This document shows positions 15,214 to 57,081 of a stretch of 64,000 bases of DNA, in pieces. A program made the translations under genes and the position numbers. Under the pieces are notes generated by a model, which searched no databases, was not told where the DNA came from, and saw only the letters and a list, made by a program, of their open reading frames with translations. How positions within the stretch are numbered: the stretch's first letter is position 1; each line of letters begins with the position of its first letter. Source of the DNA: Ophelia neglecta (lineage: Eukaryota); contig OZ260666.1 of NCBI GenBank assembly GCA_965285935.1, forward strand, positions 45,322,001 to 45,386,000, given 5' to 3'.

Positions 15214-15340
15214 ATGAATATGCAAACACATGAAGAGCCTGGCACTGCTGATATCATAGGAAAAGTGGATCAGTCAAATGCCAAAACAGCTAAAGGTGGT
15301 GGAAAAGCAGCCCCAAAGCGCAGAGGAAGGAAACGAAAAG
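15214..15340 (+). CDS. First coding exon, isoform A, of an unidentified large gene (partial): MNMQTHEEPGTADIIGKVDQSNAKTAKGGGKAAPKRRGRKRK; probable nuclear protein
   Basis: ATG has A at -3 and in-frame TAG TAA upstream at 15181. The exon encodes 42 codons +1 nt and ends at donor AAG|GTACGT (phase 1). It carries a basic NLS/AT-hook-like PKRRGRKRK motif. A possible acceptor TCTTGCTACAG ends at 15031. Confidence 0.6.
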
Positions 15341-15417
15341 GTACGTCTGCAAAGCTGAATTTCCATTGCTTTGGATAAAGACCCAATGGAAAGATATATA
15401 CGTCATAGTGCTGTGGC

Positions 15418-15425
15418 TGACGTCA
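15418..15425. promoter_or_regulatory. Full palindromic CRE (CREB/ATF site)
   Basis: TGACGTCA lies 78 nt downstream of the coding exon, with its CpG retained in CpG-poor surroundings. Confidence 0.3.
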
Positions 15426-17910
15426 ACATTTCTTGTGCTTATGATAATATAGCAAGAAATGCAATCCTTACCATGATGGTTGTATTAAATGAGCTAGAAG
15501 ATATGTAGACAGACATGTACTTTACTTACAAATTGGCACTAATCAATCTTTTAAAACAAATTTCAAGATGGAGGCCCTAAACTTGCCTCTGGAAATGTCA
15601 ATGAATATCTTCCCTCTCAGCATTAGAGAAAATTCCAAAGTTTTCCATTTCTATGAGTTGTTCATGTTATTATTTACATGTAAACATGCATAATCAGGAA
15701 GGTCAGTTTTGATATTTCTTACAATTTCAGTAAGAAAATGCCATTGAAATCTCTTATAAGAGAAATGGTGTAACTAACAGTGAATCCCTATGTGTTGCAT
15801 TGTTTATGACAATCATTCATCTGGTAGTTATTGTGATGGGCTTATTGAATGCCCATTATAGGCTTAAATAAGTTAATATGCTGTGCTTTTAGATATTATT
15901 ATGCTTAATTCTTAGGAAATTCATCATTGACAATTTTATTTTTTTAATTTTATTCAGAGTTGGTATTTGGTTGCAGATCATTACATTCTAACATGAGATT
16001 TGTTAATACTCCTTTACTTGGGAAAAGACTGTAAGTGTAAATAACCTTGAAATGGTCATTAGTTTGCTAATTAAGTATTAGGTCAAATAAATTGAATCCT
16101 GTCAAATTAGAAGCCTGAAGGAGTCAGATAATATATTCTTTATTTGTAAACTAAGATAACCAAGTTTACCAGAGCTATGTGCATGGTTATGCTCATCTTT
16201 TGTTTCCAGTAAACCAACTGACAAGCTAGTGTGCTGCTTAATTGAAGGATACAGCTAATCCTAGTATATCCGGAACTAAATAAGTGCAAATATATTTATT
16301 TTGGTTATAGTGAAACTTATTGAGGTTTCTGATTTACAATAAAGACCTTATTGTAAAATTATAAATTTTCGTTGTGTGGTTTAAAGAAAGAATTCTTCTA
16401 GGTTCTTTCTCTGTCTAAATTGTTCTGTGTATACACTTTGTGGCTTTGTCATAAGATTTGACCTCCCCCCTCGCATCCTTTTTGGTCTCTCTCGTACACC
16501 AGAGAAGTAGAGTTCAAATCTTATTTACAAAAGCTGATTTCTCAAAGCTTTTCCAAGAAAATTTTGGTTGAGTTAACTAACCCACCTCTCCAGGACACTT
16601 AACCACCTTCCACCTCCTCTTTTCTACCTATGATTTTTAAGGTAGCTATATGTAAGCCAACTATAAGAAAATGTAGGTGGCATTTAATATTCGGCATGGA
16701 CCTTAATTTTTTTACTTTCTCCACAATTTCTCAGCAGGACAATTTATTGTAATCTTTTTTCTTGTTTGAAATGCAATATAAGGAAAAGCTGATAACTTCA
16801 TTTAACATCGAGGTTTTGGAAAATTGACGCACATTGAAACTAGTTTTGAATGTTCGGGTAAAAAGAAGATTGCATGAATGTAACAGGCAATTAATTGTTT
16901 TATGCATCATTTTTCTTTGAATAAAGTCATGTAACCCTCAAATATAAGCATTCAAATAAATGAATCCAATTTGGGAGCATGTCTCTGTTTCAATCATTAA
17001 CTGGTGTATGTGATTGAAATGTTGCTACAGTAAGGATTACAATGGTCATAAGCTTTAAATCTTCTTAAAACATCTAGGGTTTTTTGTGGCCATTTTGGTG
17101 GAAACAGGTAAAATGCTGGCTTTGTGCTGTTACCTTTCTGACATGTCAGTGAGAAATTCACTTGTTTTGACTTTCTGCCCTGTTTTTAGAATTCACCTCG
17201 ATAAATGTAGTAGTTAACAAATAAGCAGGTGTATTTAACAACTAGTCATTTGTGAGCACACTGTTTTTATTTCTGAGACATTACTTCGACAAATAAGCAG
17301 CTATGTTTCTTCCTTTGTATGCGATGTGTCTGAGGTGCGCTATGCAGAAAGATCGTACTGATAGCGTCAACTTTACACGAATCTAATATTACCCTTCACA
17401 GATCGCGGAGGATCCTCCCAATGATAAACAATAGGCAAACCTGTAACCAACACCTGGGTGCCATGAAGTACGTTCCTCAGCAGTCAAATCTTCTCTTAAA
17501 GGCTAGCCATTTTGTCAAAATGGGAGAGACCGATAACCGTTTATTTTCATAAGCATCATCTAAAGGCATGAAGCATTTCCTTTGACTGACTTGTCAGTGT
17601 TTTGACAAGTAATTTTGACTCCTTTGAAGTGTGAATATATAATGATGCATATCTTTGCAGGTGTCAAAAGGTAGATTTTGTTCAGAAGCTCTGCTCAGAC
17701 AAAGGGTTACACACACAACCATTCTTTAGTTAATTATCAGTATGCCATACATAGTTTTTTTACTTATTGTAACACATTATATCTCATGTATTTCATTTCC
17801 TTTTCCTACGACCACAAAAAATTCTAAGACAAAAGTAAGACTATAAATTAAAGTTATAGAGTTTGATACAATCTTACTGATAGAAAGATATCGTAGTGAG
17901 ATGTTGCATG

Positions 17911-17991
17911 TTTGAAATTGATATGAACTTGCACACATTTGAAATTGATATGAACTTGCACACATTTGAAATTGATATGAACTTGCATACA
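17911..17991. repeat. 27-bp tandem repeat x3
   Basis: TTTGAAATTGATATGAACTTGCACACA is repeated three times, near-perfectly. Confidence 0.95.
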
Positions 17992-19431
17992 TGGAACCCT
18001 GTTTGATTTATAAGAACAAATAAGATACCAAATAGACTTACTACTTGAAGATTATATTCTTTTTTATCAGATTTAATTCTGATTCAGTTAAGAGGACTTA
18101 TTTAGCAGTGAGTCTGGGTCAATCAGATTGTCCAGAGTTGAGTTATTTGATGCCTCATGGGTGCCTGATGACCCTTGATGAGGTCACTGTCTGGCAAGGG
18201 GGAAAGGTCATGAAATATTGACCAACTTGTCAACTCTTTTACACATCAAGGGAAAATATGAGAGCCATAAAATGAATTGGCTAATCTGTTTCACTGCATT
18301 CCTGAGGTCAAAAATTTGTATTACTATTACTAGTATTAAATATTTAAGATTGGAACTGTGAAATATTGGTGGCATGCAGTGCTGTCATTCAACATCTAGC
18401 ATTGTTTTGAAATTTGAAACACGTTGCCAGGCATATTGGTAGAATGTAAAAAAAAATACAGACCTAACAGTTGGATGACATTGTGGTCTAAGAAGTTAAA
18501 AGTTTCATTTTGACCATTTGATATTCCTCCAATCATAGGTCACTGCAATCGCCAAGTGGCAGGTTTGTCTTGAACTTGAAATAACCCATTTCTAGTTCAG
18601 CAAAATCATACTGATAGGCTGCACAGTTCTGAGAATGTCATTGGAATAAAATCAAAATTTCCTGTGAATAAAATAGAGGATAAAAATCTTAAAGGCTAGA
18701 AACTTCCTATAGGGGCTTGGTATCTCCAGCCAAGGCAAATCTATCGTATTTTAGGAAACTCACCCATTCCATCTAAATAAAAGTTGATCACAAAATGTTA
18801 AAAGTAGCTTTTCACCCAAGCATTTCTTTTGTAAATGGTGTTATAAGAGTTTCCCAAACTTTGCAGGAGCAGGGTTTCTTGGACAACACTTCTCATTTCA
18901 AGTACAAGGTACTGTCCACTCAGATCAGTTCATGGATTAATAAACTAGCTAGGTGACTGCTTACACAATGGGCTCCTGTGGATTTACTTCAAAAAGTACT
19001 TTGAACATATACTTTGGTTTCACATTAAACCTTTGCAGTTCCTATTTAAAGGACCTTTCAATGTTATGAACATTTTAGGGAACTTTCAAATGTACACATA
19101 CTTTTGTACTTTATTTGAGTCTTTCCATTTGGACATATAAAAAGTGATAACACATATTGGTATCACCAGCATCACGAGTAGTTAAAAATTAAATCAGGAC
19201 TCCTGGCAATATGATTAAACTGGATTGGTTTTAAGGTTCCTCACAGTAGTCTTGTTTCCGATAAGTGGCACAGATAACTGCCCAAAGAAAATGATGAAAA
19301 AAGTCAAAGTGTAAAATAAAAATGAATAAAATGCTCCCAGTTGAGTTATTAAACCATGCACTCTGATCATTTTCAATCCAGTATAGACATTAATTTTCCC
19401 AGGTTACCATGACAACTGGTATTCTCATATT

Positions 19432-19612
19432 GAACTAATCAAGATACAATGGCCTAATCTAGACACAATTCAATTGTACCTGGATTATGGCCATTGTGTC
19501 TGGATTAGGGCCATCAATTGTGACAATGATGGGCCCTAATCGAGACACAATAAATGGCCCTAATCCAGACACAAGGGCCCTAATCCAGACATAATTTATG
19601 GCACTAATCCAT
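19432..19612. repeat. Nested direct/inverted repeat of GGCCCTAATCCAGACACAA (foldback/MITE-like remnant)
   Basis: About 8 degenerate copies occur in both orientations, including the hairpin TTGTGTCTGGATTAGGGCC...GGCCCTAATCGAGACACAA (19494-19550). Confidence 0.7.
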
Positions 19613-19693
19613 TAAACTTGAGAATGTTGTTATTCAAAACACTAGATGGTCACTCTTTCTGATATTTGAAATGTGAGCATTAAAGTGAATGTA

Positions 19694-19870
19694 GAGTGGT
19701 CTCTGGAATGTAGGGCCACTCCTAAATACAAGAAAAAGTGGCTCTCCATTGAAGGTGGCCCTCCATCGGAGGTACTTTAACACAGAAAAGATAGTATATG
19801 GGAATTCATAAACTTTCCTGCCATTGCAGGTGGCCTTTCATCATAGGGGCTTTACATCGCAGGGGCCCTG
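19694..19870 (-). mobile_element. Diverged copy of the 23609-23786 MITE family, opposite orientation
   Basis: It aligns end-to-end by eye with the reverse complement of 23609-23786 (shared ATGTAGGGCCA, AAAAGTGG, GGTGGCCCT, ACTTTAACA, GAAAAGATAG, GGGAATTCA, TCCTGCCAT.GCAGGTGGCC). Confidence 0.8.
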
Positions 19871-20633
19871 TGCATGTATGTGAATTAGGCATTATATTGT
19901 AAAAACACAGGCTTTCTTAAATACAATCTAAAAATACATCAAAAAACCATATGCTAAAATAGGTTTTCAAGTAGGCAAAATATAAATGTTACACATTTAA
20001 ACTTACTCTTTATATTCTGTTTAAATGTATGAAATACAGTTGTGTTTGTTGGGACATTGTTGTCACAAATCAAATTTTGAGTTTCTTGCACCACAAGATA
20101 TTGTATGAAAATAAATCTTAATGCTCCATAATTATAAAGATAATTGTGCAGTAATGTATTTGTTCATTCAAGCTTGTATTATGAGCGCTTCCTCTGCATT
20201 TATTGTCAAAGTTTAACTTGTAATTAAATGTTGCAATTCTTTTTTTTACAAGGTCTAAAGGGTATTTGTAACCATAAATTGTTGTGCATACTGACAATTT
20301 AATGCAGGGCCACCTATATGGTTGGCTGTAGCAGATGAAAATGTACAATTATTTCAGCTTTAAGTAGTACTTTTTTGCCATATTCATACCAATACTGCCA
20401 TCTGGGGGATAAATACCGTAGATTACCCCATCATTTTTTATTATATCATGTTTAAATGGAATTTTGTGGTTAACCTTGTTATAATCAACATTGATGGCAG
20501 TAATGTCAGCTTAATGTGAAAAATGACAGGAATAGAGTTAATAACTCAATGTTAAAACCAGTAAGAACATTTATGTCTATGCAATGGCACACCCTTCAGC
20601 ATAGATATGTCATGAAATCTTACGAGGTGCATA

Positions 20634-20920
20634 TTGTTTCCCTGGAGAAACAAAGCATACCATGCTGTTTAATATTTAAATATGGTGTTTCATTGTTTCC
20701 ATGTTTCCTACAGATTTCTACCAGCAGGACAAGTAGTATGGTTTCCCTGGCGTAACAAAGGATACCATGCATTTTAATGTATTTAAATGGGGTGTTTCTT
20801 TGTTTCCCTGTTCCCCTCAAACTCAAAATGTACATAGTAGACAAGAAATAATACACAAACCTGATGCTTAATAGCTATAATATATAAAACGTCTGTTTCC
20901 TGGGAACAAAATATGCCCCT
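20634..20920. repeat. Degenerate ~105-bp tandem duplication (2 copies plus partial)
   Basis: GTTTCCCTGG..AACAAAG.ATACCATGC..TTTAAT..TTTAAAT..GGTGTTTC.TTGTTTCC occurs at ~20636 and ~20741, with a partial copy at ~20894. Confidence 0.7.
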
Positions 20921-23608
20921 ATATGCACCTCGTAAGATTCCATGCCATATATGCTTCAGCACACTCTTCTCCATCCCCCTAAACCAATTGCCACATCCTT
21001 CCCCACACCTGGGTATAATTCTGGTGGTAGGGATTTCCTAAAAGATACTTTAAAACAGTTCACAAGGAATCATCAGGCTTTAATGCTGCTTGCATTTCTG
21101 TTATTGGCAATAAGTGCAACAACTTTAGTAAATGTTCAATTGTACATATACAATGCATATTGAAAAATATTAAAAGCTATAATCCTATCCTCTTGTTTTA
21201 AAAATAATGGCACCATCCCAAACTGATGGATACATTAGAAGATAAAGTGTGCACCTGAGCCAGATTTATGTGATTTCTCCCAGTGATGGACTTTGCCATA
21301 ATGTTCGCTCTCCTATCATTGCACAGTTGATGATTAACAGAGATGGTGGGCATCAAACTAATGTGAAAATGTGTAATATTCTTGCCATGGTGATGGATAA
21401 GGATTATTTTTAATGTCAGTTACAACTGGGAAAGCAATTTTACGGACAATAGGTGGGTTAATGTAGTGATATTGTCCTGAAGGTACGCATATTTGAAGCC
21501 ACATGTAATTATGAATTAATATTGTTCTTATTTATTCTTATTTTGTGTCATTTATGAAAATTATGAATGATAAAGGTGCATAGCAGTTTAAAGAATGTGA
21601 TATTATGCGAGCAACAATCAGAATAAGGAATTGTGTAGACGATCTCTGGATTCTTGGATATGAGGAAAAAAGTCTCAATTGTTGTTGTTTCCAGTTTATT
21701 TAGATTAATCTATGCAAAGTATCAGTACTTTCCCCCTGATGAGAAAAATTACAATTTGCAAAGACTGTACATTGTATATATAAATATATGATGGCTAAAA
21801 TAAATGTTTGAAGCCAAAATGAAAAAATATGTTTCCTAGCTATTTTCAGCGCCAAGACCTGTAGAAACAGCTTTAGCTATTTTCCTAAGTACGGTGTTTG
21901 TTGTTGGATGGTTTGAGCCATGTCTCCAGATGGGAGATGTTTCTGCCCGTTAGTCTGTGGATCAGGTAGCAGGGCCCACAGTAGTCCTATCTCTTTGATC
22001 TATAGCCAGGCGGGATGCGTGACAAATTGTTCAACTGAAGAGATGGGACCTTACTAATTATTATTCCTTGTTATTAATGGTCGCCATAGGGCGAGACAAC
22101 ACACCTTCCCAGGGCAACAGCTCGCTTTTATGGATCCCTTGGTGTGCAGAACTCGTGTTCGATCCATTGTATTTGTGCAATTTCCCAGAATTATCGTCAA
22201 TTTGTTGGCCTATTATGGCGGCACTTGTGACCGTTTACTCAAATTGAAGATGACATTTGTAAATTTAGCCACTTATCTTTCCGTGGCCGTGATTCCAACC
22301 CAGAGGCTCAGCGGTCGTTTAGGGCTCAAAACGACCCTCCTGCGACTCACTGCGCCAATGCAGAGCCATGTTTTAGGGATGAGCATTAAAAAGCAATTTC
22401 AATCAATTTCAGCTGGGTATCAAAGTGCATGATTGCAACTACATTTAGTTGTGTTGCGCGCCAAAAGGTCGCACCCCAAATAAAATGAGGTTAAACGAAC
22501 ACATCTAATGATCATCAGAGTCTGCTTCGCTTCTGATTCCTTGGTTTGATGTCAGGCAATGGCAAAAACGGCATCAATATGTGTTTTATCTTGTCACAGA
22601 ACTAAAATGAACCGTTTCCTTATGGGAATATATGCGATAGGCAAACCCTTCGGGTAATCTATTGCACTTAGGTGGACATGTATGTGTCTCTTCATGTCTT
22701 CATTATCCCTTGTCTGAAATCACTTAAGCACAATGGCTTCCATCATTAATTCTAAATGGGTACTTTGTTCAAAAATTTGAATTGGAAGCTAGAGATATTG
22801 GGTTCTCCCATTCGCTGGCTTTTTTTCTCTTGCTAACTGCTTGGCTTGATGTTTAGTGATCTAGGGATGTGCTGCTATCTGCTGGTCATATGCAAAGTTA
22901 GGTAGTTTGTGGCTGCAATAGCTTTGCAAGTATTGGAGCCTTTGATCTTCAAATCAATATTCTAATATTTACATAGTATATTTTGAGACAGCCAGAATGA
23001 TGCAAATTTAAACAAACTCAGCTGGCTTGATGTATGAGAAAGATTCTGACATTGAGCAGATCCAATGGTAGACCAGCTTATTTGTAAGCCTGCGCAATCA
23101 TGTAAATTTGCTAGTTTCTACATGCTTGATACATAGTCCAACTGGTGCTTTGCATGGTATAAGTCACTATTAGTTTAGGAAGATAATAGCTAAGGTGCCA
23201 CAAGTAAAGATGCATAATTTCCCAGTATACAGTTTACTAATACATGTATACCATAAATACCATGCACCATGGTCCAACAGTCCCTACCTATGAAGTTATA
23301 CATACCTTTTTATTTTTTAAGGCAATTATTTTCTAATTTCTTTCAAAGCAAATTTCAATAAATTTCAAATTTTCATCTGGTCTGTTGCCTTCAACTAATC
23401 AGCCTTTCTTTCTGTAAAGCCTCATTTGAACTTATTTGAATTTATTTGAATATCCCCTAACCTATTGCAAAAGGAGTCCCTGGTTGCTTTTGTTTATTCA
23501 AAAGCACATATTATCATATTAGTGTTTAAAAGTTCAGGGTGAGTGTCACATAAGGTATAAAATGCCATCTTATAAATTTGTTTGTTAATATTTTCCCTTG
23601 TAGGTGTA

Positions 23609-23786
23609 CAGTGGTCCCTGTGATGTAGGTCCCCTCTGATGAAGGGCCACCTGCGATGGCAGGACAGTTTTTGAATTCCCTTGTCCTATCTTTTCCATGT
23701 TAAAGTGACTCTGATGAAGGGCCACCTGCAATGTAGGGCCACTTTTCCTTGGATTTAGAGTTGGCCCTACATCGCAGGGACCACTG
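23609..23786 (+). mobile_element. Tc1/mariner (pogo/Tigger-like) MITE, 178 bp, intact ends
   Basis: TA|CAGTGGTCCCTGTGATGTAGG ... CCTACATCGCAGGGACCACTG|TA gives a 21-bp TIR (20/21) and a TA duplication. There is an internal direct repeat CTCTGATGAAGGGCCACCTGC. Confidence 0.9.
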
Positions 23787-23869
23787 TATAGGACACACAC
23801 TATGATCCCCCAGCATGCACTGCTTATGTTATCTCTATATACACCAGTTTCCACCCCGGTGAGCTTATA

Positions 23870-24475
23870 GGATAGACACCATGAGGATCCTCCCTGAAAA
23901 GACTGAACACTTGGATCAAGGTCTGGTAAGGAGCATTCCCTGTCTAGGATACCTACCTGGAAACTCTTCTGCATGGAGCCTCCCATGTAATGTCCACACC
24001 TCAGGAGCTCTCTGTAAAAGTATATATGCCAGGAGTCCCCTTGTAAAAGTCCACACAGCAAGATCCCTCCTGTAAAACTCCACACATCATTTGCCCCCCT
24101 CCCCCCTAAAGGCTCAAGATCTGTAGCCCCACCACCCTCCCTCTCTGTGAAGGTCCCAACATCAGGAGACTTCTCTGTTAGGTCCATGCATCAGGAGCCT
24201 CACCTCAAAAGTCCACACATCAAGAGCCCATGCTGAAAAAAGTCCACCCATGAAGAGCCCGCTTGTAAAAGTGAATGCATCAGGAGCCCCCCTGTAAGAG
24301 TCCACACAGCAGGAGCATCCTGTACAGTCCACACATCAGGAGCACCTCTGTAAAATTCATACATCTAGAGCCCCCCTGTAAAAGTCCACATATCAGGAGC
24401 CTGGCCTGTAAATTCCACACATCATGAGGCCCCCTGTAAAAATCCACAATGAAGGAGCCTCACATGTACAGTGTA
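23870..24475. repeat. Degenerate minisatellite, ~27-29-bp unit CATCAGGAGCCCCCTGTAAAAGTCCACA
   Basis: About 20 diverged copies. This array contributes to the spurious 200-aa minus-strand ORF. Confidence 0.85.
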
Positions 24476-27400
24476 TGTGGCATACAACTAGGTATAAGGT
24501 TTTATAGTTCCTAGCACTGACTTCATCATTTTGTTGCTGAACCCTTTCAACATCTCCCAGAGGACGAAAAAACACTTTATATCAGATGCTGAGGATTTGG
24601 TTTAGGTCACTTATTGATGAAGCTAGGCTTTCTGGATAGCATTCACCATGACAAGCCACATCAGTAATGGTTACACTCAAAATAGACATCATTAAAGGCA
24701 ATCCTTACAAAAGTAAGTGTCATCTTCATTTCAAGGTTTAATGCATCTGAAAACTGGTTGAAAGCAAGATGGCTTTCTTGGCTATTTTCTTATGCAGCAG
24801 CATGGGGTTTGATGGCATAAACTTGATTAAACAGACTGTAAAGTTCATTACCTTAAAGGTTTTAACAAGCAGTACAAGTTTATTTGCCAAGCATTGCATC
24901 TGCAACAGCTCTGTCACAAATTTCAGTCCTATTTCATAGTCTAATATTTAGGTATATGTATTGTAGAATTGCTTTCTTCCTTCCAATGCTGTTAATTTTT
25001 TGATTTGTGCAGTTAGAAATCAAAAATTATGTTTTATGTGTTTGATTACAAGTAGCAAGAAATCATCCAATGGCACCTAGTCTTTTGGGGAAAACAAAGA
25101 AATGATAGATTCCCCATAGGATTCTGCATTCCCCACTTTTCTTGACCGGTTACCCTGCCAAACTCAGCGTCTTTTAACCTGTCATCAATCACATTGACGT
25201 AAATCTTACTGCTCAGATCACCTAGACTCTTTTGACCTTAGAAATATGATGTCTGTTCTCATTCGGGTGCTTGTGACTTGGTGGAGGGAAATCTAGTGAA
25301 ATCAACAGAAATTGGTGGTCGTTCAAGCATGCTCTGCTAAATAGATCCTTGGCGACGCTGAATTAAACTTTAATCAAGTTGACTGAAATCTGAATGAGGA
25401 GAGGTTTGAGCAGACGACAAGCAGATCACTCTCACTTACCGTGGCCACTGCTGCGTGTGATTCTCAATTGTCTTCCAAGGGGCATAAAACTTGTGGATGA
25501 ATGCTTCGTCAATGACGCTCAAGTGATTATGCATTTCGTACACAAATTTCTTCCTTATTTTGTGACAATTATTGTCCATTTTGTTGCTCTGTTTAATCTT
25601 TTGACTGCCTGGCTCTTGTCTTTAAGATTTAGTGATATTTTATCAATGAATGCTGGCAGATTTATTTAACTCAGGAATGTCAAGAAAACCCTCCCTGGTG
25701 TGTCATGAAATATGCTGTCAAATAAACACCCATACCATGTCATGTACTTCAATAAATTGCACTCCCCCTATTTTTATGGTCACATTGTACCCATGGTAAA
25801 ACTGGCCGATTCTGAGATTCTTTAATGAAGTGGCCATAATGCATCCATCAGGACTGGATAGGGAATAACAAAATACGGCACAGTTAAAATCAGTTCAAGT
25901 TTTTAAGCCCACTGGATACTTATTATATTCACAAAACATTGGGTTTGAGCTTGGCAGTGATACAACTACTCAATCTTTGCTGGTACTTAATATTGATTAT
26001 TGCAGTAATAAAACTAAATTTTTTGTATGTACACATAAGTGATTATGTGTAGGCCGGCCTACTACTCGCCCAACCACTACTAAGGATGCTGGGGTCTGCT
26101 GAGTCGCTGATCACAATCAGGTTGGTCTCAGCGACTTGCCGGATCCTTATCCCTTATCCTCTAGATGGATCCAGTCACCATAATATCGATTGACTATTTA
26201 TGGAATGGCTTTCATCCATGAGAACACCAAACATCATTGTTTGCCACCATTGCCAACTCATCAGACAGGTTCTGATTAGAAATTAATCTTATTTAGATTG
26301 GGATTGGTACATATTTATAACAAGGTGTGTGTTCATGTTTGAGGGAAAGGGGGGGGGGGGGCTAAAGAGTTATATATATATATATATATATATGTATTGT
26401 TTACTACATGGAGATTGGTTTGAATCTGTTCAGTGTTACAAGTCTCTACTTTTGCAGTTGCAGGAGCATGATAATTTTCCCAGGAATGAATATTCCATCT
26501 TGTTTGATAGTTTAAATGAATAATGTACTGCCTATGGAAATTTTAAATGTTCAATGAATTTTATACTGTTAATATAATTCTTAGCTATTATCAGTTAACT
26601 GTCTCTTTATTATATTCTATTAAAGCTAGTAATACCACCAATCCTGCTGTGGATAGCACAATAATTTTATCCTCTATGTATAATTAATTCATGTATATAT
26701 AATTTTGTTTGGTGATGTCACTGATTTAATCTGGGGACTTAATTAAGACAAGTTACCAAAAATAAACCAAATAACTGGATACATGACAGTATTATTTTGT
26801 AATGTGATTCTGGTAATTAATTGCCAGATAATTAATTACCATAATATTGCCATAATCATAATCTTTGTAAATCGCATTACAAGATTTCACTAATCAAAGT
26901 TTCCATGAAAATAAAATCAACCTGATCATGAACACATACAGCTTAACGTGGAAATACACGTACAGTAGGTTTGTTTGTACATATATATTGTTTCATTACC
27001 TAAATGGACAGTCTTTCCAGGTAAAGCTGAAGTGCTTGTTTCAGATGGTTTAAATATTGTTCACATTGTGCAATAATTAGTTTGAAATGGAATCATTGAA
27101 TGAAGGGGGTCAAAGTTCACTTCATCACATGACTTACAGTAATTTCACTTGTAACTTTTGGCATCACTTTCATTTACAATTGAATATTTCGTATTGGAAA
27201 GGTTCCCGAAATTGAAGAAGAACAATTTAATCAAATACATCTGCCACCAAAAGGGACACCACTTTGTGCAATTTAATTAAAAAGTCGGTGTTCCAAATTA
27301 ATATTGCAGTAGCTCTTCAAATTAGTTCATGTAATATTCTTTCCAGTATAATAAAGCCACAATACACATCCTAAACCTGACTAGGGAAATTTAAGGAGCA

Positions 27401-27741
27401 TATATAATATCATATCTGTAGGTTGTTCTCCTTTGTTCACCTGCAATACAAAAAAAAACATAGAATTATTAACTGCCTTATTGCACTTTGTTTTGCTCCG
27501 GTTGTCGTTTGATGTGTTTTCATTTATTTGATGGAAAAATTTAATCATAGTTGGATCCTCTATTTTACATTATATTACCAGTAAATTCATTAAAACTTCC
27601 AGTGCAAAACTCAAATGAAGATTGGCTTTGGCAAATTACCTTGGAAAATCCTTTTTCCAAAGGTTGAAAAAATGACCAAAAAAGGTATATCCAATTTATC
27701 CTTGAAAGATATAACAGAAGGCAAATAGTGCCTGCAGTTAT

Positions 27742-28635
27742 CAAGACCATGGGGAATAATGGTATGTGACAAGACCATGGGGAATAATGGTTTGGGACAA
27801 GACCATGGAGTATGATGGTATGTGACAAGACCAAGGGGAATGATGGTTTTTGACAGTACCATGGGGAATGATGGTATGTGACAAGACCATGGGGAATAAT
27901 GGTTTGTGACAAGACAATGGGGAATGATGGTATGTGACAAGACCATGGGGAATGATGAGCACAATGGTATGTGACAATATCATGGTCAATGATGAGCACA
28001 ATGGTATATGACAAGACCGTAGGGAATGATGAGCACAATGTAAAATGACAAGACCATAGGGAATGATGAGCACAATGGTAAATGACAAGACCATGGTCAA
28101 AGATGAGCACCATGGTACTGTATGTGACAAGACCATGGGGAATGATGAGCACAATGGTATGCAACAATACCATGGGAAATGATGAGCACAATGGTACGTG
28201 ACAAGACCATGGGCAATGATGAGCACAATGGTATATAACAAGACCATAGGGAATAATGAGCACAATGGTATGTGACAAGACCATAGGGAATGATGAGCAC
28301 AATGTAAAATGACAAGGCCATGGGGAATGATGAGCACCATGGTATGTGACAAGACCATGGTCAATGATGAGCACAATGGCATATGACAAGATCATGGTCC
28401 ATGATGAGCACAATGGTATGTGACAAGATCATGGTCCATGATGAGCACAATGGTATGTGACAAGACCATGGTCAATGATGGTATGTGACAAGACCATGGG
28501 CAATGATGAGCACAATGGTATGCAACAGGACCATGGGAAATGATGAGCACAATGTTATGTGAAAAGACCATGGGCAATGATGATCACAATGGTATGTGAT
28601 AAGACCATGGGGAATGATGAGCCTGATGGTATATG
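27742..28635. repeat. Bipartite minisatellite: seven 28-bp units then ~18 37-bp units
   Basis: CAAGACCATGGGGAATGATGGTATGTGA starts at 27742, 27770 ... 27910. From 27938 the unit carries an extra 9 bp (ATGAGCACA). Confidence 0.95.
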
Positions 28636-29640
28636 CTCCAACTATGATCCCTGGCACTTTTGGATGTATGAATCATTGGTCAAATGCTAAACACAGTATG
28701 CCCTGCTCACAAAATACACATACAAAGAATAGCTCCCAAACTCTATGAATTAATTTGGCTCTAAGGGATAAAATGTTGGCAACATTCTAAGCACAAGTTA
28801 TGGTTCCTCCCTTTCGGTGACCTAGCTTATTCACAGCATTCTGGCCTGCTGCTTCCCTAGTAACAATCATGACATTCTGAAATTAGTGCCATTAAATGGG
28901 TGATTGTCTTGAACTGAACTGTTTTGGTAGTGGTGCCCACTACCCAGCAGTATGCCTGAATAGTATGGCAGTCCACTTGATTGCAAGTGCTATACTACTT
29001 TGTTAAGAGTACTTATCCCAACTGATTCAAGGTGAATGCACTATATGCATCTCATGATAAAAGATCTGCCAATGCATGTCCATGGAGCTGTGGAAGTCAG
29101 GGTTTGCTGCTTGCAGCTTTACAGCATCTTCCTCATTATTCTACTCATATTGAATGTTTAGCTGTAATATGAGTGCAGTGTATCCATCATGCCTCTGGTT
29201 TGATGAGGTTTTATAATCCTGGTCAGTATTCTCAGGCACCTGCTCTGATATCAAAAGGCCAGGCCAGAGGATATTACGCTTGATGTATGTCTTGTCCTGA
29301 CCAAGTCACAATATTAGGTTATTAGTATGTGACAGTGGCCTCCTCAGAAATTAACCCTGAGCACCGGGATCAGTGTGGGTCAGTGTGATGTACCTAGGAG
29401 GGTCTTCAAACTACAGCTAAGGGTTCCCCTTTCCTAAAGGATCATGTGTCTCTACAGGCTGGTGCCCGAGCGGTAAATTAACTATAAGCATTGGCTATGT
29501 GCACTGTTATTATTCTGAAGATTAATCACAAACAAAAATCATATGAATATGAATAAATGTGCAATTCTAGTATTGATTTTCAGCCCAATTATTTGCATAA
29601 AAATAATTGTGATCTCTTATATTGTGTCCTGATTTCTCAG

Positions 29641-29683
29641 TCTACTGGGTGTGGTTTCTCAGCATGTAATTTGCGTTTTAAAG
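29641..29683 (+). other. Candidate short non-coding exon (possible leader for isoform B)
   Basis: Acceptor GTCCTGATTTCTCAG ends at 29640, and the perfect donor AAG|GTAAGT starts at 29684. Confidence 0.3.
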
Positions 29684-31730
29684 GTAAGTAATGAGATTGC
29701 CCATCAGATCTTTCATGCTCTTCATCATTATTTACTGGTCCCTCATTACAGGCCAGCTAGAAGATGATGTAGCCACTTGGCCATTATGGAGGAAACCATT
29801 AGCTCTTGTTTGGAAACAAGAGTTATTGATCAACTGGTGATTGGCTTTAATCATGGTTTGATTAGTGTGTGGCGGAGCCCCCTAAAGGATTCTAGTGGCT
29901 CTTCTGTGCTGGAAACCAAGAAAGTTGGGATATGCACAAAAAGAGCTCAATATCTCATTCCTAACATTTCATGCCAAGAGCAATTTCTGTAAGATTCTGG
30001 GATGAATTAGCATTGTTCTACTGTAAGCAATCCCACAGTTATAATACCTTTGTGCTTGGGCCCTTGGCAACAGTTCATGGCAGTATCTCTAAAACATACA
30101 TGTAAATACAGGCTTAATGTAGGTTTATTATGTAAATGTATAAATATAATATGTACATTTGAAACTAATATGACCAAAATTAATTAGCTAAACCAAGATT
30201 CAAGATATCATTTTTTACGGTTATGACTCAAGTTTAAGTCCTGATTAATGAAATGCAGACACAACATTTCATTTGTTCACATACAGCACTTTTTATGGAC
30301 CTTTTTAAGAAGCAACCAAGAAACTGATACCGCAGTTGTAGGAATTTATCAATTAATTATGTCTTATGGCATGCAACCATAACCTGTGAGATCTGTTACT
30401 CAAAATTAAGATGAGTTACTCAATCTTGTTGGGGGATCCTGAGCGCCTGTACTCTGATTGAGTTCAACCGGGGAATTCCAGGCTGCATCAGAAGTCATCT
30501 ATATTCAACCTTTTTTTACCAGCCTAAACAGGTGATATTTTGACCCAAATTGAGAGTTATTTGTTCAATTAAACTGTATATTTAGTGCTCAATCAAAATT
30601 AGGTCGTGGCTAGGAAAGAGCTGTCTGTGTTTCTTTCATCCCATCAAAGCAGTCAGATGTTTTCAGATGATTGATGTTTTGGTCCAAAAAATACAAAATT
30701 GTTAGAGAGACTTTTTATTAATCATATTCACTATGATTCAAGCCACCCTTTCTTTTAATATTAAGGCAAGATCAATATTTAATTAAGATGATGGATAATA
30801 CTAGTACACTAACAGGCTAATAGATAAGATGCTGAATTTTAGAGTACCCACTTCGATAATTAAATGTTGCCGCCAACCTGGAAATATTTTGTTGTTACCA
30901 GTGAGGAAACGAAAAAAATAATTATGCAAAAGCTAATCCCAATGATTGTAATGTCCCTCACTATGCGTTCCAGACTAGAGCAAGCATAAAACAAATGTGG
31001 AATGTTCTCAGACTGGTAGATGAGTGAAATTTTCTCAGATTGGTAGATCTGTGAATTAAATGATCCCAAACTGGTAGATGTTGTCCTGTTAGCCAAAATT
31101 ATAAAAAAGCAGTATTATTTTTCTGTTTGTATTCACAAACATTCACTGTATTCATTCTTATACCACCAAAGTTTATCCCAGCTACATGTACATACCTATA
31201 GGTATGCATATATGCATGCCAATTTATTTCCATTTAGATTATAAAACCAGAGGTTTTCCATCACAGTATTAATTTACTTATGGGTACTGGTATTGAGCTT
31301 CCAACATTCCAGAGGTAACATGTTTAGTTACCACTAGAATATTCTGGCCATTGACATAGTAACTGTACATATTATGCTACTAGTATGAAGTCATAATTGG
31401 CATATTGTCCACAAAAGTCAACATTGGCAGTAAAGGGGTTAGGGATTTTTGAACTGTAGTTAAAGCAGTATTTTACATGTACCAATATAAAGCAGTATTT
31501 TAATCTCAATTGATAAAAAGAGCTCATCTGAAAGAACTAATCTTTATATCTATCTTAAGCTACAGGTAGTCAATGAATCATTAGTTTGTTAAGATTTCAC
31601 TCTTTTTCCAATTTTGTTCGGTTACATTAAACTGATTAGGTTATAAACTTTATGTGAACACTATAAGTAAATACAGGAAGCAACATTTTATTCTGATATT
31701 ACTGAGTACATTCCTTCTAACTGCATGATA

Positions 31731-31911
31731 ACAATTAGACCTGTGTTTGTGGTCACCTGTTTAATAAGGTCACCTGCCCACTAAGGTCACTTATTAATTG
31801 CCCAATCCCCATTTATGCCTGTGTTAACTGGCCTGCCTATTAAGGTCACCTGCATAATCTGATCAGTTTTTTACAGCCCCTTGACTGACCTGATTAGACA
31901 GGTTTCCTGTA
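31731..31911. mobile_element. Degenerate Tc1/mariner-type MITE (~180 bp)
   Basis: The ends ACAATTAGACCTGT ... ACAGGTTTCCTGTA form decayed inverted repeats. Repeated internal AAGGTCACCTG motifs give the same architecture as the 23609 MITE. Confidence 0.6.
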
Positions 31912-32253
31912 TGTGGTTACTCAGGATATATAAAGCTGTATTTCATTCCAGTTTTGTGGATTGTTTAATGGTACTTTTTTTTCTATTCAAAATATAGTAC
32001 AAAGTGAGTACATTAAACAGTAAATTCATTCCTGTTGAACAAAATGTAAGACAGTTTTTCCCAGGTTTTGAAGAATATATAGTGATATATTATAAGGATT
32101 TTACCCTATATATATCAGTATTATTTTAGGAAACATATTGGGCAAATATAAAATTCAAACATGTATAGCATAAATGTAGACTGGTTATTAGGCTATACCC
32201 TATCTGATAGCATAAATGGTTACCCATAGGAACAAATTTACACTTGAAGAGAA

Positions 32254-32320
32254 CGCCCATCAGGGATGTAACCCCAGTCTCCTGACCAGGCCAGGGTCTT
32301 TAACTACTGCCCCTGGGCTA
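32254..32320 (-). pseudogene. Decayed tRNA-like / SINE head fragment
   Basis: The minus strand reads GCAGTAGTTAAAGACCCTGGCCTGGTCAGGAGACTGGGGTTACATCCCTGATGGGCG, resembling A-box and T-arm/B-box sequence (compare tRNA-Asp GGAGACCGGGGTTCGATTCCCCGACGGG) after CpG decay. It is not an intact cloverleaf. Confidence 0.25.
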
Positions 32321-34193
32321 TGGCACACTCCAGCGTGGCTTTAAATGGGTTTTATCTGTGAAACAGACACTATTCAGAAAGTCTGGCACTTTCTAAAGAT
32401 AACATACTGCACTAGAGTACTGGCCAGTCTAATTCATTGTGATGTCTCTGGTGTGAACACAGTAACATGTAATTTAGCAAATGAAATACATTGACAGAAA
32501 CATGAAGATAGAAAACCAGTTAACACACACAGTTCTCACTTTTCAGACACCAAAACCCCCAGAAAAATGGCCAGAAGAAAAGGTTGGTCCATTTTCAAAT
32601 TGAGCCTGGAAATTGAATTTTGATTCACATTTCTGCAAATTGATGATTAGCAGTCCTATTTTTGAGCATGGTTTAAATAAACATGTCAATAGTTTTAACA
32701 CAAACTTAGTCATAATGTAAAAAGAAATGTATTCCCTAAACTATATCATGTTTCTTTCTTTATTAGATTCTATCCTTATACAATGGTTTACTTTTAGTTA
32801 AAATTGTTGCTTTAACAATTTGAAATGTGTTTATCGCCTGCGTACACAGTGTGTTAATGGTTGAGACCACTTCAATATCCTGTTATATCATTTTACATTA
32901 TGATTTTCTTTGAAATGTGAATATGTTCTTTGAACAATTCCAGAAAGTGACTGTAGGATTATTCATACTGGCTTAATTTATTTCATCAAACAACACTAAA
33001 AGAACACATAGCTCCAATGTTATTCAAGCAAGGCTTAAATAAGTAAGTGAGGAGCCTTGGTTCTGGAGTCCAGTTCGTCTTGTCTAGGGGTGGTCTCCCT
33101 CAAGAACTTTGATATCTCTGACCAGGGACAGACCCCTGTAGATGGCTAACTTTTATCAGAACATAAACATTTGACTACTGAGGGGTGCTGCCCTCTTAGC
33201 ATTTTGATATCCCTGTTGACATGACTTATTTGACTTTCAAGGGCCCTGCCATTGGCCTCTGTTTCTTGGCTATTTCTCTCACCAGTTGCTGCCCAGTAGG
33301 GGCCTGTGTCACTTCATGCAGGATTAGAAGTTGGCAGGTTTTAGAAAATTTATCAGCATAACTTCCATACTCTGGTAATGTAACATTAATAGATATAGCC
33401 TTGTTATTTGTATACCCAGAGAATCTTGTTATATGAAATACAGAAACTGTAAATACATATTCAAAAATGTTTAATACAATGTGAGCTAAGGAAATATATA
33501 TTGTAAGTAAGTAGCAGTATATATGTTATACATGTACCAATTTTCATGTTTAATAGTTTTCTGGTACTTCTGGACAAAGTTGAAACAGTTTTTTGTCTGC
33601 ATATATACACACGTATATGATATACGACGTGTAGCCATACATGTTTTATATGAGAGTGAAGTTTGAAAGCCAACTTTCTCTTTGTACAAGTCATCCATCG
33701 TGTTTGTTGTGTTTTAGAGTGATGCATGAAGCCCAAATAAATCCTGGGGCAGGATTTTTAGACTGGACAGCATCAGGTGGTATCTGACAATAGATAATGC
33801 CCAGCAACGATGACACCTGGGCTGTGAACGCTCCAAGGAACTGGTGTTTCTTAACACCTGTGATCAAACTGATATGGCATAGGCCCTAAGACAGCATTGC
33901 CTGAAGATATATCCACCTCAATTGTTTATGTATCTTTCAGTTATGAACATTTAAGTGGTCGCTTTCCTTCGATCAGTCGTTAGACATTTCTTGTCGGAGG
34001 TTGAGCCATACTGGTAAAACCATCTGTGGACCGGCCTTTTACAAATCTCACACATGTAGCAGTAGAGTATCCTTCTACTTGTGGACAATTAACAAGTTTG
34101 GATCGCCGCTGGCATCTGTTGAAAGTGTGAAGGAAAGAGTGATTTGTTATTTTTGGTGATAAATCAAGTGGAAAGTCTGAGTTGCTATAAAGT

Positions 34194-34341
34194 ATGGAGT
34201 CAATCACAAGTAAAAATGTTCCGAATGAAGTTAGCCATAATGAGGTCTCAGTGGACCCAACAGAGAAAGAAATCAAAACGGAGATATTTGACAAATTGCC
34301 GGGGGATCAAGCTGTCACCAGTGGCTCTGCTACATCTACAG
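34194..34341 (+). CDS. Alternative first coding exon, isoform B (partial): MESITSKNVPNEVSHNEVSVDPTEKEIKTEIFDKLPGDQAVTSGSATST
   Basis: Strong Kozak context AGTATGG with in-frame TAA at 34188. The exon encodes 49 codons +1 nt and ends at CAG|GTAATT (phase 1). Exon acceptor TATCTTTCAG ends at 33940. The composition is protein-like, with a psi-K-x-E SUMO motif IKTE. Confidence 0.6.
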
Positions 34342-37300
34342 GTAATTTGATGTTAATGTCAGACATAATGAGACTCCGTAATGGTAAACTCTTACCTAAA
34401 TAGACAGGCGATACATGTTAAACTGCATGATTGTTTTGTAATATCAGTGTCCATCAAAGGGTAGTTTGAGGAATTATCTGTATAATATTTTATTGCAATG
34501 AACAATGTTTAGAAATTTGTCAGATTTTAGAATTGCTGATGGCTAATTACATGACCCATCTTAAAGCACATTATTTTATTTATTATTGCCAAGATAGAAA
34601 GAAGCAACCAACCTGGCAGTATTGAATTACATGTTTATTTGATTGATTCATTCATTGATTGATTTATTGATATTGATTACTATTGATGGATAGATTAAAC
34701 AACATCTGCAATATTCACATGGTATTTTAAACTAACATAGTAATTGGCAACAGCTAGTATAAGTGCTTTTAAGAAAAGACAAATTTGCCAAGATGCAGAA
34801 CTATGTTTAAGTTAATAGTTAAGGGTCAGTATAATAGTAGCAGTAATAATTTAAGATATTAATGACCACCATTTTCCAGACAATGTTCATATTTTGGTCA
34901 CATTATGGAGAAATTATATAATTGACCACTTTGCAAGGCCCCTAAAATATTGTTCTGTGCATTTGACAAAGTTTTGTTATCTTTGATGAAAAATTTGAAA
35001 TTATATTTTCCTTTTAATCAAGGCAAAGTTGCACATTTCAGCATGTTTTCCAAAGAATACTGAGTACGTTTGGAATGATTTTATTTCCAAATGTAGCCCA
35101 TATGTGTAAGCTACCTTGGGGATGACCTAGAAAACTTTCTGAATCCCAGCTCACAGCCAAACCACATATTAATACTAAAATAATTAAAGGTATTTCTATT
35201 GTAGATCACATGAAGAAAGCTTTTAGTATTATAAATTCATCCAAAAACGTGAACTGTGTCTTTAGCACTAGAGGTGCTACTCTATAGTCTAATAACTAGG
35301 TCTTCCTTGTTTGAATTACATGAAAGGCTATACTGTCATGGCAGCTACCATACCTTTTCCCCTCTCACACGAGACACATACCAAGTGGTTGATTAGTTCA
35401 AAGAGAATCCCCTGCCAGTAGGTTTATCGTAGGATCTGGTGTGTTTCATAGCTTTTGCATTTTTACTTGCAAAGCTAACTACAGTATTCTGTATTTAGGG
35501 ACCATCATAATGACTGCTGGACTTATTATTAATTGTTAACTGTTATGTTATATATCTTGTTGACTTTTTAATTTTGCCACTACAATATCAATCTACCAAT
35601 GGAAAAAAAAATGAAAATAGAAAAAGTAAGCCATTAACAATCTGGCAGAACTCTCATTACATTAGGGCTAATTTAGATTGTTTTCAGATAGAACATATAA
35701 CTGGGGCCAATTGGGAATCCAAAATGATTAATTTTTCATTTGGTACATGCAGTACGAATTACAATTTGGTGAAATTATATTACATATCCTCATTTTAGAA
35801 AAACTAATTTGGCAACTTGTGGACTACAGGTTTAATAATTGAACTGATGTGGGTGGCAGTTGCGAGCCTCCATTTTAAAGGTGTTGATTGTAGTGTCAGC
35901 CTCAGAAGAGATAATCATGATTTCATTAGCATTACATTATAATATTAGTGTAATTACATGTTCATGTCAGTGAAATTATGGTGATTGCCAGGATAATTAT
36001 ATAAATTTAATATTTAGACCATACCAAATACTAGTGTGTTTCTCAGGCACAGGTTTTCACTCGTTATCCTGTTTAATATATTTCTGGCGTTAATTGCATA
36101 AGCTAAAATCTAACAGTAGCCATACTGACATTATTGAATATAATTTAATGGTGGTAACTTTGGTTCAGCTGTGAGTTTTTTTTAATTTTGTCCAAAGCAA
36201 TTATCTCATCACAATGGGAATTTTAAAAGAAGTTGTTACACACACACTAATGTTGCATTCAGCTTAAGGATTTTTTTCTCCTCGTAATCACAATTATTTT
36301 GGGAAAAAAGCAATCAAGTTTGTATTTGTAGGGGGAGAGTTTCCCATCATTATTCTTCTATAGTTTGGTTGCTTTTAGTTTTACACTAGTGCTCTCATTC
36401 CACCCTAGTTAGAATGAAACTTCTTGATCAGTCAGCATTATTATTATTTTTGTCCAAACCAATGCATACCATGGGTATGTTAGTTTGGTGCCATCGTTTT
36501 TTACTTTCTGTAATACAACTGAGTGTGAGGTGTGTTTCAAAAGAAAAAGAAACAATCAGAGCAGGAGTTATGACCTGGGCTAGGGCAGATAATTAAGTCT
36601 CATGCCTTAAAACAGTTTAACATAGTTTGGCCCTGATCATTAACAGGTAATGAAATAATAACCTGATTAAGTGCAGATAGAGGCCACCATAGGAGTCCAA
36701 TGAGAGAACAACTAACACGTCCATTTGTCCTCGTAGTTGGAGAAAAACAGGCTTACATGAGCTGGGTTTTTCTGTTCACCAACTTTTGCTTATAAACATG
36801 ATGATGAAGTATGTAAGAGATTCACTTCTGTGTCATATTCCTCCTAAGATAAAGAGATGAGAATGCTATCAAACAATCATGTAAACACTGTTGTGTTTCA
36901 TTGTGCTGCCAGAGCAATGTCAGCGCTTCATTTGGTATTATTGTGCGGTGAGATTGTGGCACAGTAATAACTAGTACAGCATAGACATCGCTAAGACTGC
37001 ACAATAATACTGATTGCCACATTGACCAGTGCACCTTTTATGCTTGAACAATATATAAGCAAATAGACACACTTGAAAAATATTAAAACTTGGTCCATGT
37101 CAATTCATAATGTACCATTGTGTATGCATATATATATGCTATGATTCCACTGTAGTGATGGTTGGTTCTTTGGTTCTAGTCCACCCCCAGACTCTTTTTG
37201 GAAGTGGTTAATCAGAAAACAACATTCTAAACAGATCATGGTGTAATATCATGAAAGCAATTTACTCTCAACCGGCCTGTCATCATTTATTCTAAGTTGA

Positions 37301-38379
37301 GTTTAAATTCTAATTAATTTTGCCATAAATATTGGATGGCCTCTGCTGTCAGTAGCATGCTGATTGTGATCGGTCCATCATTGATAGAGTCACATGATTA
37401 GGGTGTCTGTCAGGGACTGATAAGAACCGGCTGAATGGCTGGCTGCCATGCTGCTTTAAAGGCAGCCAATGTCTACAGCAAGGAGAGCTAGGGGAGCCTG
37501 GCTCAAGGCTACAGACGCAACTGCTTTAGGAAATGTCTAGTTAGGGCCAGAACAATTGGGAGAACCAATTCTGCTGTGCACTTTTTGTTTTGTAACTGGT
37601 ACAGACTTTAAGATTACTTGTGTACGCAAATTGTTCAGTTTTATAATAAAGATATGAGTATAATTCAACAATAGAAAAGACAAAGTTTAATACGTTGTCC
37701 AATAAATTACATTTAACCTTTAAATGCAAGGTCACATTTTCAATTGTTTGTCAATAACAGCCAAATAATGTGAGATACAAGTAGGATTTTCACAAGTATT
37801 GAAAGACTGTCTATATAACTGTGTTGCCACAACATGAATGCTGTCTCCTTGCTTATAGACAGTCTTGTTCGGTGTGTTCTCTTTCTCTTCAGATATTCTG
37901 TGGAAATGTACTGACAGACAGGTTAATTTGTCTACAGATTCAAAACTAGCCATAGTTCACTCTTATATGCATAATACATTGAAATGGCTATAGCATGACT
38001 CTTAAAAGTTAATTTTGAATGAATACTGAAGCAATTCAATTAAATTGTGAATTGATTGGTTAATATGTAGTTTAGTTTCTTTGAGTATATTTATATTAAG
38101 TATATTTCATGATATGTAGCTAGTATCTAATTTGTAGATGAAAAAAATTGTTATTTTAAATTAAATTATGAATTTTGTTTTAATATTCAACATACAAATT
38201 CAATTTAATATAGCGTACATTTGCTCTTCTATAATTGGTAAAATGATATCCACAAAATGAAATGAATAATGTTAATATATGTACAAAATACAAGAAACCT
38301 GCATATCTGCACAGCTCATTTTGTTTTTCATGTAATTTCGTCAAATAAAAAAATGCTTTTTTTTAAACTCTGGCAATCT

Positions 38380-38491
38380 ACCATCTAAAACTGTATTATT
38401 TCATTTTCAGGTAAGTTGTCTGAGCTGACCCAAGTTGTTCTCCACACTTTTACTATTAACATCGCGTGCTGGGTTTTCTAGCCAAGTAAGT
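38380..38491 (+). other. Strong candidate recursive splice site with 75-nt cryptic RS-exon (38411-38485)
   Basis: CTAAAACTGTATTATTTCATTTTCAG|GTAAGT at 38410/38411 has an AG-free zone of ~95 nt upstream. A second donor CAA|GTAAGT lies at 38485/38486. Confidence 0.6.
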
Positions 38492-54443: not shown

Positions 54444-54772
54444 GCTTCACAGTGAACCCAAAGAAAGGCAACTGAACACAGCAGTAGAGTCCTTACTGAC
54501 CTTGACTATCTGATGACATAGCTCTGCAGTGAACCCACAGCGATGCAGCGAACACTAACATAATGGTGCTTTACTTCTGACCTTTGCTTTCTGATGACAT
54601 AGCTATGCGGTGAACCCTCAGCAAGGTAGCGGAATACTAGCAGTGTGGTGCTTAATATTGATCTTGACTTCTGTTGATGTAGCTCGGCTGTGAACCCACA
54701 GCAAGGCAGCTGAACACCAGCAGTATAGTGCTTACTGACCTCGACTTTCTGATGACATATAGCTCTGCTGTC
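54444..54772. repeat. Tandem repeat, ~76-81-bp unit, 4 copies plus partial
   Basis: AGCT...GTGAACCC.CAGC.AGGCAGC.GAACAC...GTGCTTACTGACCTTGACTTTCTGATGACAT starts at ~54444, 54520, 54601, 54681 and 54761. Confidence 0.9.
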
Positions 54773-56947: not shown

Positions 56948-57081
56948 GCCACTTCGGGTGCTGTACGAGCCATTTTGGGTGCTGTAAAAGCCATTTTGGG
57001 TGCTGTACGAGCCATTTTGGGTGCTGTACAAGCCACTTTGGGTGCTGAATGAGCCATTTTGGGTGCTGTATGAGCCATTTT
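56948..57081. repeat. 21-bp minisatellite x6
   Basis: The unit is GCCATTTTGGGTGCTGTACGA. It produces the KWLVQHP repeats in the ORF track. Confidence 0.95.

Follow-up and report, generated by a model that had tools for sequence, protein, structure and literature searches.

Recursive splicing, the stepwise removal of long introns, is documented by experiment in Drosophila and in vertebrates, and RS-exons in vertebrate long genes were reportedly described by Sibley et al. in 2015. In Drosophila, more than 500 intronic ratchet points are on record, including those of Ubx and kuz; the RS-exons that follow them are variable in length, around 50 nt, and usually disrupt the reading frame; of the two competing donors, that of the ratchet point is stronger than that of the RS-exon (PMC8605326). 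For mammals, only nine fully suppressed intronic sites are noted definitively, and most RS-exons are given as expressed (PMC8605326). The closest described counterpart of the locus considered here is Bx (Beadex, dLMO), the single LMO gene of the fly (PMC13615689). In the long isoform of Bx, intron 2 (~31 kb) contains a validated ratchet point and, downstream of it, a cryptic RS-exon within the 5' UTR (Joseph et al. 2018, as cited in Joseph et al. 2021; PMC8605326). CRISPR alleles that weaken nothing but the ratchet-point donor keep the intermediate and switch completely to inclusion of the RS-exon; the ratchet-point mutants are viable (PMC8605326).

In the annelid Ophelia neglecta, a similar arrangement is present in a window (the whole stretch of DNA that was analysed, 64,000 nt) at position 38410|38411. 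This site is a credible and, on balance, probable intronic recursive splice site with a cryptic 75-nt RS-exon; its host is an LMO gene with a long 5' intron. The anatomy proposed in the first-pass annotation of the window is confirmed, and its reading as recursive splicing is partly supported: the elements fit the Drosophila-type combination of ratchet point and cryptic RS-exon (PMC8605326). The LMO identity of the host gene is new information beyond that annotation. The annelid and fly sites share the gene family, Bx being the only LMO of the fly and the host gene the only LMO1/3-type gene of its genome. Both are located in a long 5' intron that a distal promoter uses, with the compact LIM-coding exons farther downstream, and both combine a juxtaposed acceptor|donor with a short cryptic exon that has its own, weaker donor. 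The intron is 63 kb long here as opposed to ~31 kb in the fly and, unlike the fly RS-exon, which lies in the 5' UTR, the annelid one follows a coding first exon, so that its inclusion would add a stop. Features shared with the fly ratchet points in general are the pyrimidine tract with AG|GTAAGT, the long-intron host, often a developmental regulator, the frame-disrupting cryptic exon and the regenerated donor that is stronger than the RS-exon donor. Apart from the lineage, the difference lies in the evidence: fly sites were recognised by sawtooth RNA-seq profiles, by reads across the junction and by a deeply conserved core, and RT-PCR together with CRISPR alleles proved the one in Bx; the annelid site is a candidate predicted from its sequence. 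Exon definition, donor competition and premature stops in the RS-exon are also common ground with the vertebrate RS-exons; in contrast, the dense ladders of candidate sites in the Ophelia neglecta genome are closer to the fly pattern.

The host gene is best assigned, on sequence comparison, to the LMO1/3/Beadex class of LMO genes, which encode two tandem LIM domains and little else. The LMO exons were searched individually, not as a joined model. Exon 2 was found in 120 kb of sequence downstream of the window (G000:C9:45400667-45400886, or 78667-78886 in window numbering extended past its end), 40,256 nt past the site and 14.7 kb past the window end. It has a strong acceptor (ttccattgcag|GT), is entered in phase 1 and has a translation that starts G-PMQISQQ. 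Pfam LIM domains are recognized in exon 2 (LIM1, 1e-14) and exon 3 (7.5e-10), and exon 4, the last one, completes LIM2 and closes the open reading frame. The closest solved structures are those of LMO2 (4e-24) and LMO4. Altogether, 374 database proteins match at E<=1e-10; among the matches listed, the named ones are mostly rhombotin-1 (LMO1) or LMO3, with identity of up to 79-84%, and the cluster of one close match includes a protein of the annelid Paralvinella palmiformis. The gene is the sole LMO1/3-class copy in the genome, the next-best LIM1 match being 60% identical; a second LMO-like gene is located at C2:75568968. Within the window itself, a crude acceptor/donor/ORF scan for the next coding exon yielded only five poor candidates, all of which were rejected.

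The exons and intron segments that define the context of the site are the following:

15214..15340, plus strand: exon 1a, opening with ATG, 127 nt, 42 codons, phase 1, ending ...CGAAAAG with donor AAG|gtacgt
34194..34341, plus strand: putative exon 1b, opening with ATG, 148 nt, 49 codons, phase 1, ending ...CTACAG with donor CAG|gtaatt
15341 to exon 2, plus strand: the whole predicted intron, 63,326 nt
15341..38410, plus strand: segment between the exon 1a donor and the site, 23,070 nt (36% of the intron)
38410 to exon 2, plus strand: the site to exon 2, 40,256 nt

Both upstream exons had been taken as coding in the first-pass annotation, and this stands for exon 1a but is doubtful for exon 1b. 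The homologue of exon 1a, P0127, is a single match among 1.84 billion representative proteins (E 1.7e-4); it is a 51-aa ORF call on a 1.7-kb Logan contig from another organism. The two sequences are identical in 28 of 40 positions, and the likeness runs to ...APKRRGRKRKG and stops exactly at the exon 1a donor. Judging from this boundary, exon 1a is a real coding exon, because intron DNA would not be so conserved. Its phase 1 matches the entry phase of exon 2, and from this match together with the absence of other coding exons we infer the link between the two. With exon 1a real and its phase fitting exon 2, the site would therefore be on the sense strand of a 63.3-kb intron, 36% of the way in, which agrees with the long intron that had been suggested earlier.

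Exon 1b has no Pfam match and no homologue by a word search that, for this query, covers only proteins of 27-86 aa and whose blank thus carries little weight; as a conserved exon it was rejected on these two results. In the contigs of sequencing runs X2 and X3 (not X1), an A>T change at 34212 converts codon 7 of exon 1b from AAA to TAA, so its standing as a coding exon is doubtful. A second change in the same exon, G>A at 34223, leaves the encoded residue unchanged. By itself, an open reading frame that begins with ATG and ends at a phase-1 donor is no evidence for an exon because 12 such ORFs of at least 40 codons are found in 368 kb, and only three of them are real (PDZ exons of a neighbouring gene). 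Furthermore, a first step from exon 1b would excise only 4,069 nt, so that the logic of stepwise removal of a long intron applies mainly to exon 1a.

The candidate ratchet point and its cryptic exon consist of the following elements:

38315..38410, plus strand: acceptor side, an AG-free zone ending ...tatttcattttcag (from the sequence)
38409..38416, plus strand: candidate ratchet-point core AG|GTAAGT, with the junction at 38410|38411 (from the sequence)
38411..38485, plus strand: putative cryptic RS-exon of 75 nt, with stops in 3/3 frames and without ATG (from the sequence and its translation)
38486..38491, plus strand: putative RS-exon donor CAA|GTAAGT (from the sequence)

The earlier description of an acceptor that is AG-free over ~95 nt is borne out, the AG-free stretch being 94 nt long (38315-38408; the nearest upstream AG is at 38313-38314). 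The final 15 nt are pyrimidine-rich, and farther upstream pyrimidines are mixed with A; the pyrimidine content is moderate, 0.65 in both the -23..-4 and the -43..-4 interval (T content 0.425 in -43..-4). The tract is mediocre and is a weak point of the site. The acceptor end (ttcattttcag, or TTTCAG) is fused directly to GTAAGT at 38410|38411, and the second GTAAGT is located 75 nt downstream, at 38486-38491, precisely as had been reported. The phase-1 reading of the 75-nt unit, KLSELTQVVLHTFTINIACWVF*, indeed ends in a premature TAG upon translation, and the remaining two frames also contain stops; the length of the unit is a multiple of 3, yet its inclusion would disrupt the frame via the stop. 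Because both upstream exons end in AG (at 15340 and 34341), a further point that the sequence bears out, ligation would regenerate AAG|GTAAGT with exon 1a or CAG|GTAAGT with exon 1b. Since CAA|GTAAGT, the putative donor of the RS-exon, has no G at -1, the regenerated donor surpasses it: a crude score gives 8.9 for the regenerated ratchet-point donor and 4.9 for the RS-exon donor, a difference of ~4 bits in the direction that the donor-competition rule demands, where these scores rest on self-set approximate consensus weights and are neither NNSPLICE nor MaxEnt values nor the output of trained models. The features of Drosophila-type sites that are found here are thus the fused acceptor|donor, the predicted position on the sense strand of a long intron, the closed short exon, the stronger regenerated donor and the disruption of the frame.

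Two other origins of the motif were considered and dropped. An Rfam search of the whole window gives no match at the gathering score, and a structured RNA was dropped as an explanation. Derivation from a repeat or transposon was rejected because a search of the assembly, which skips very common words, returns no second copy of 38200-38700, 38287-38418 or 38085-38286.

The core by itself is only mildly unusual in the window because YYYYYAGGTAAGT, which is matched once as opposed to 0.07 expected, is found at least once in 7 of 100 shuffles of the window. The longer form CAGGTAAGT occurs once on the plus strand and is absent from the minus strand of the window; AGGTRAGT occurs five times on the plus strand and never on the minus strand. 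A further pattern, YYYYNYAGGTRAGT, is one base out of register with the site, so its 0 matches are meaningless. When all 1358 AGGT positions on both strands of 184 kb are ranked by a crude score of our own, the site comes second; the position ranked first has an AG 4 nt upstream and is without a downstream donor. The 80 kb upstream that were scanned contain no site comparable to 38410|38411 which is, once sites with an AG just upstream are excluded, the best RS-like site on both strands of 264 kb. The remaining 40 kb toward exon 2 contain no second RS-like site that would subdivide them.

Several other elements are found in this region. The junctions at 29682 and 40037 (plus strand) show the consensus AG|GTAAGT without a preceding pyrimidine tract (gcgttttaaag|gtaagt and gccgactag|gtaagt, respectively) and may be donors of further alternative first exons. 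At 11018-11250 (plus strand), the best acceptor of the region (ttctcttcctcttcatttcag|ATTGAG) opens a stop-filled unit for which two GTAAGT donors are available, one following 11197 and the other, 53 nt on, following 11250. This unit looks like a non-coding 5' exon of a plus-strand transcript with two alternative donors, possibly one that starts from a still more distal LMO promoter. The long intron also contains minisatellite arrays at 27742-28622, 62015-62616, 24139-24448, 54452-54771 and 56948-57082, with periods of 28/37, 40, 29, 80 and 21 nt, respectively, and up to 19 copies; these arrays give rise to the long repetitive ORFs of the window.

The signature of the site was also counted across the whole genome (762 Mb). 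The 12-mer TTTCAGGTAAGT alone is found 268 times compared to 174 times in the reversed control, that is, only 1.5-fold above the control. The excess is greater when a GTRAGT follows: 21 sites against 6 in the reversed control for a GTRAGT 20-50 nt on, 12 against 2 for 51-81 nt (the studied site included), and 9 against 2 for 150-211 nt. In the 51-81 nt bin, several of the 12 sites are copies of one another. Composite sites, defined as TTTCAGGTAAGT with a GTRAGT 20-81 nt on, amount to 32 distinct ones against 8 in the reversed control, so about three quarters of them are beyond chance and roughly a quarter may be chance occurrences. As a class, the composite signature is statistically real in the genome of Ophelia neglecta.

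The acceptor features of the other 31 composite sites were compared with those of 40 plain 12-mer sites, namely the first 40 non-composite ones among the first 100 listed of the 268 12-mer sites, all of them on one contig (C1). Neither the AG-free zone nor the pyrimidine content was used in the selection of the composite sites. All three features are higher in the composite sites: the median AG-free zone is 42 versus 16.5 nt (one-sided p 2.6e-4), the median pyrimidine content in -23..-4 is 0.80 versus 0.60 (one-sided p 1e-6), and that in -43..-4 is 0.675 versus 0.55 (one-sided p 2.8e-7). Among the first 100 listed of the 268 12-mer sites, adjacent pairs less than 100 kb apart include 10 on the same strand and 4 on opposite strands, with ~3.5 expected in all. 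The units of the composite sites are mostly 28-55 nt long, with a tail of 59-79 nt.

Some of the composite sites form same-strand ladders of three or four, spaced by 17-110 kb, with the donor 28-79 nt past TTTCAGGTAAGT. Such ladders are located at G000:C5:87523562-87609670 (minus strand), C8:6300540-6447031 (minus strand) and C5:14035651-14114453 (plus strand). Two units of the C8 ladder and one unit on C12 are recognisable copies of one another.

Compared with this class, the site in the LMO intron is typical in some respects and less so in others. Its AG-free zone of 94 nt is high, being reached or exceeded by 4 of the 31 composite and 3 of the 40 plain sites. Its pyrimidine content of 0.65 is at or below the composite medians in both intervals, and its T content of 0.425, as opposed to a composite median of 0.525, falls between the composite and plain classes. 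The score of the RS-exon donor (4.9) is typical of composite sites, and the 75-nt RS-exon is at the long end of the range in this genome. A joint threshold of an AG-free zone of at least 50 nt and a pyrimidine content of at least 0.65 is passed by the site, by 14 of the 31 composite sites and by 2 of the 40 plain ones. Gaussian likelihood ratios on the acceptor features of the site are equivocal, ranging from 0.38 to 6.9.

Given that the fly Beadex gene removes its long intron in two steps, stepwise removal is, by analogy, probable here too. Under this scheme, transcription would begin at the distal promoter, and exon 1a (15214-15340) would be spliced first to the acceptor at 38410, excising 23.1 kb. 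This acceptor would be recognised by exon definition, via the downstream donor at 38486. Ligation to exon 1a would make AAG|GTAAGT, a consensus donor stronger than CAA|GTAAGT, and this regenerated donor would then serve to remove the 75 nt and the 40.3 kb that still separate it from exon 2 (LIM1, phase 1), such that the finished mRNA would bear no trace of the RS-exon stop. If the weaker donor at 38486 were used instead, the 75 nt would be retained, with the TAG falling 23 codons after exon 1a. Both the use of the site and the order of the steps are predictions from its sequence features.

The simplest alternative is that the motif is an unused acceptor- and donor-like sequence which arose by chance in an AT-rich intron and came to attention because many windows were read. 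This explanation is unlikely, and several of the observations above are nevertheless consistent with it: the reversed controls are not empty (174 for the 12-mer and 8 for the composite signature), at nine sites the GTRAGT follows as far on as 150-211 nt, the core is matched in 7 of 100 window shuffles, and the pyrimidine and T contents of the site are intermediate between those of the composite and plain classes. Chance would, however, have to account as well for the sense orientation in a 63-kb intron of a conserved gene, for an AG-free zone of a length reached by only 3 of the 40 plain 12-mer sites, and for a downstream donor at the distance of an RS-exon together with upstream exons that end in AG; moreover, the counterpart gene of the fly has a proven ratchet point (PMC8605326). 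A different and still less probable reading is that the 75-nt unit is an ordinary alternative cassette exon whose initial GTAAGT is incidental. This unit would be a 5'-UTR exon if translation starts at the exon 2 ATG, and a poison exon after exon 1a. It does have its own acceptor and donor and is without an ATG; exon 2 carries an ATG (G-PMQISQQ) and relatives keep (M)QISQE there, so short isoforms that start in exon 2 are plausible, and expressed RS-exons are known in flies (PMC8605326). Against the cassette exon, use of the acceptor would recreate a consensus donor stronger than the exon's own and, in Bx, the stronger donor wins completely (PMC8605326). By our own estimate, ordinary exons that start with GTAAGT after TTTCAG should be very rare, and a cassette exon therefore fails to explain the 32 composite sites.

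It is barely plausible that 38411 is a mere donor, either of an ordinary upstream exon (e.g., 38315-38410) or of a first exon ending at 38410. CAG|GTAAGT is a consensus exon-donor junction too, and the AG at 38313-38314 could act as the acceptor of such an exon; however, only ~50% of the positions before this AG are pyrimidines, the stretch 38315-38410 is rich in T and A, contains runs such as A7 and T9 and resembles the end of an intron, and the second GTAAGT 75 nt on would be left unexplained. The recursive splice site with a cryptic RS-exon thus remains the preferred reading of the locus.

The mechanism itself is already known, and the site represents a concrete, testable candidate for recursive splicing in an annelid genome. 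A full-text literature search for recursive splicing in lophotrochozoa, annelids and molluscs made no dedicated paper apparent, judging by titles and incidental mentions; recursive splicing of the vertebrate LMO1 and LMO3 is not mentioned in the literature searched, a search that is uninformative on this point. Of wider interest is that the site may parallel the Bx ratchet point at the level of the gene, or may even be orthologous to it. That the annelid site and the fly one derive from a single ancestral protostome site, with recursive removal kept for more than half a billion years, is a speculative and rather improbable scenario; if true, this would be the first case of orthologous recursive splice sites in different phyla, and it would show that ratchet-point ladders of the fly type are widespread in Lophotrochozoa. 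The comparison opens the question of whether recursion is tied to particular genes across phyla or arises wherever introns lengthen. Since a coding exon precedes the cryptic exon, the isoform of the distal promoter would be cut short if the second step failed; the donor-competition rule would accordingly have a protein-level consequence here that is absent at the fly 5'-UTR site.

Contigs of three sequencing runs of one sample cover the region; they are DNA-like, as depth is level between exon and intron and joints are absent. The main contigs extend across the entire region around the site. Some others agree with the reference over part of it, either as far as 38286 or 38418 or else starting at 38085 or 39246, and continue into unlike sequence; these breaks, of which the one at 38418 is 8 nt past the candidate ratchet-point junction, may be due to another haplotype or to a structural variant of minor frequency. 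The 555 nt around the site (38094-38648) contain none of the 40 single-letter variants listed out of 54 in 6 kb; this may mean nothing, as the other 14 are outside the listing.

Further open reading frames are found on both sides of the LMO gene. On the minus strand, 41-67 kb past the window end (G000:C9, loci L006-L008), there are four long open frames, each with a near-identical PDZ-domain-like stretch, which look like a NHERF-type multi-PDZ gene on the opposite strand, downstream of the LMO gene. Upstream, a block of LINE-type endonuclease and reverse-transcriptase ORFs extends from -78 to -34 kb relative to the window start, followed by tetraspanin-like ORFs on the plus strand at about -31 to -20 kb (G000:C9, loci L014-L019; read from translations), which places the start of the 5' territory of the LMO gene downstream of about -20 kb.
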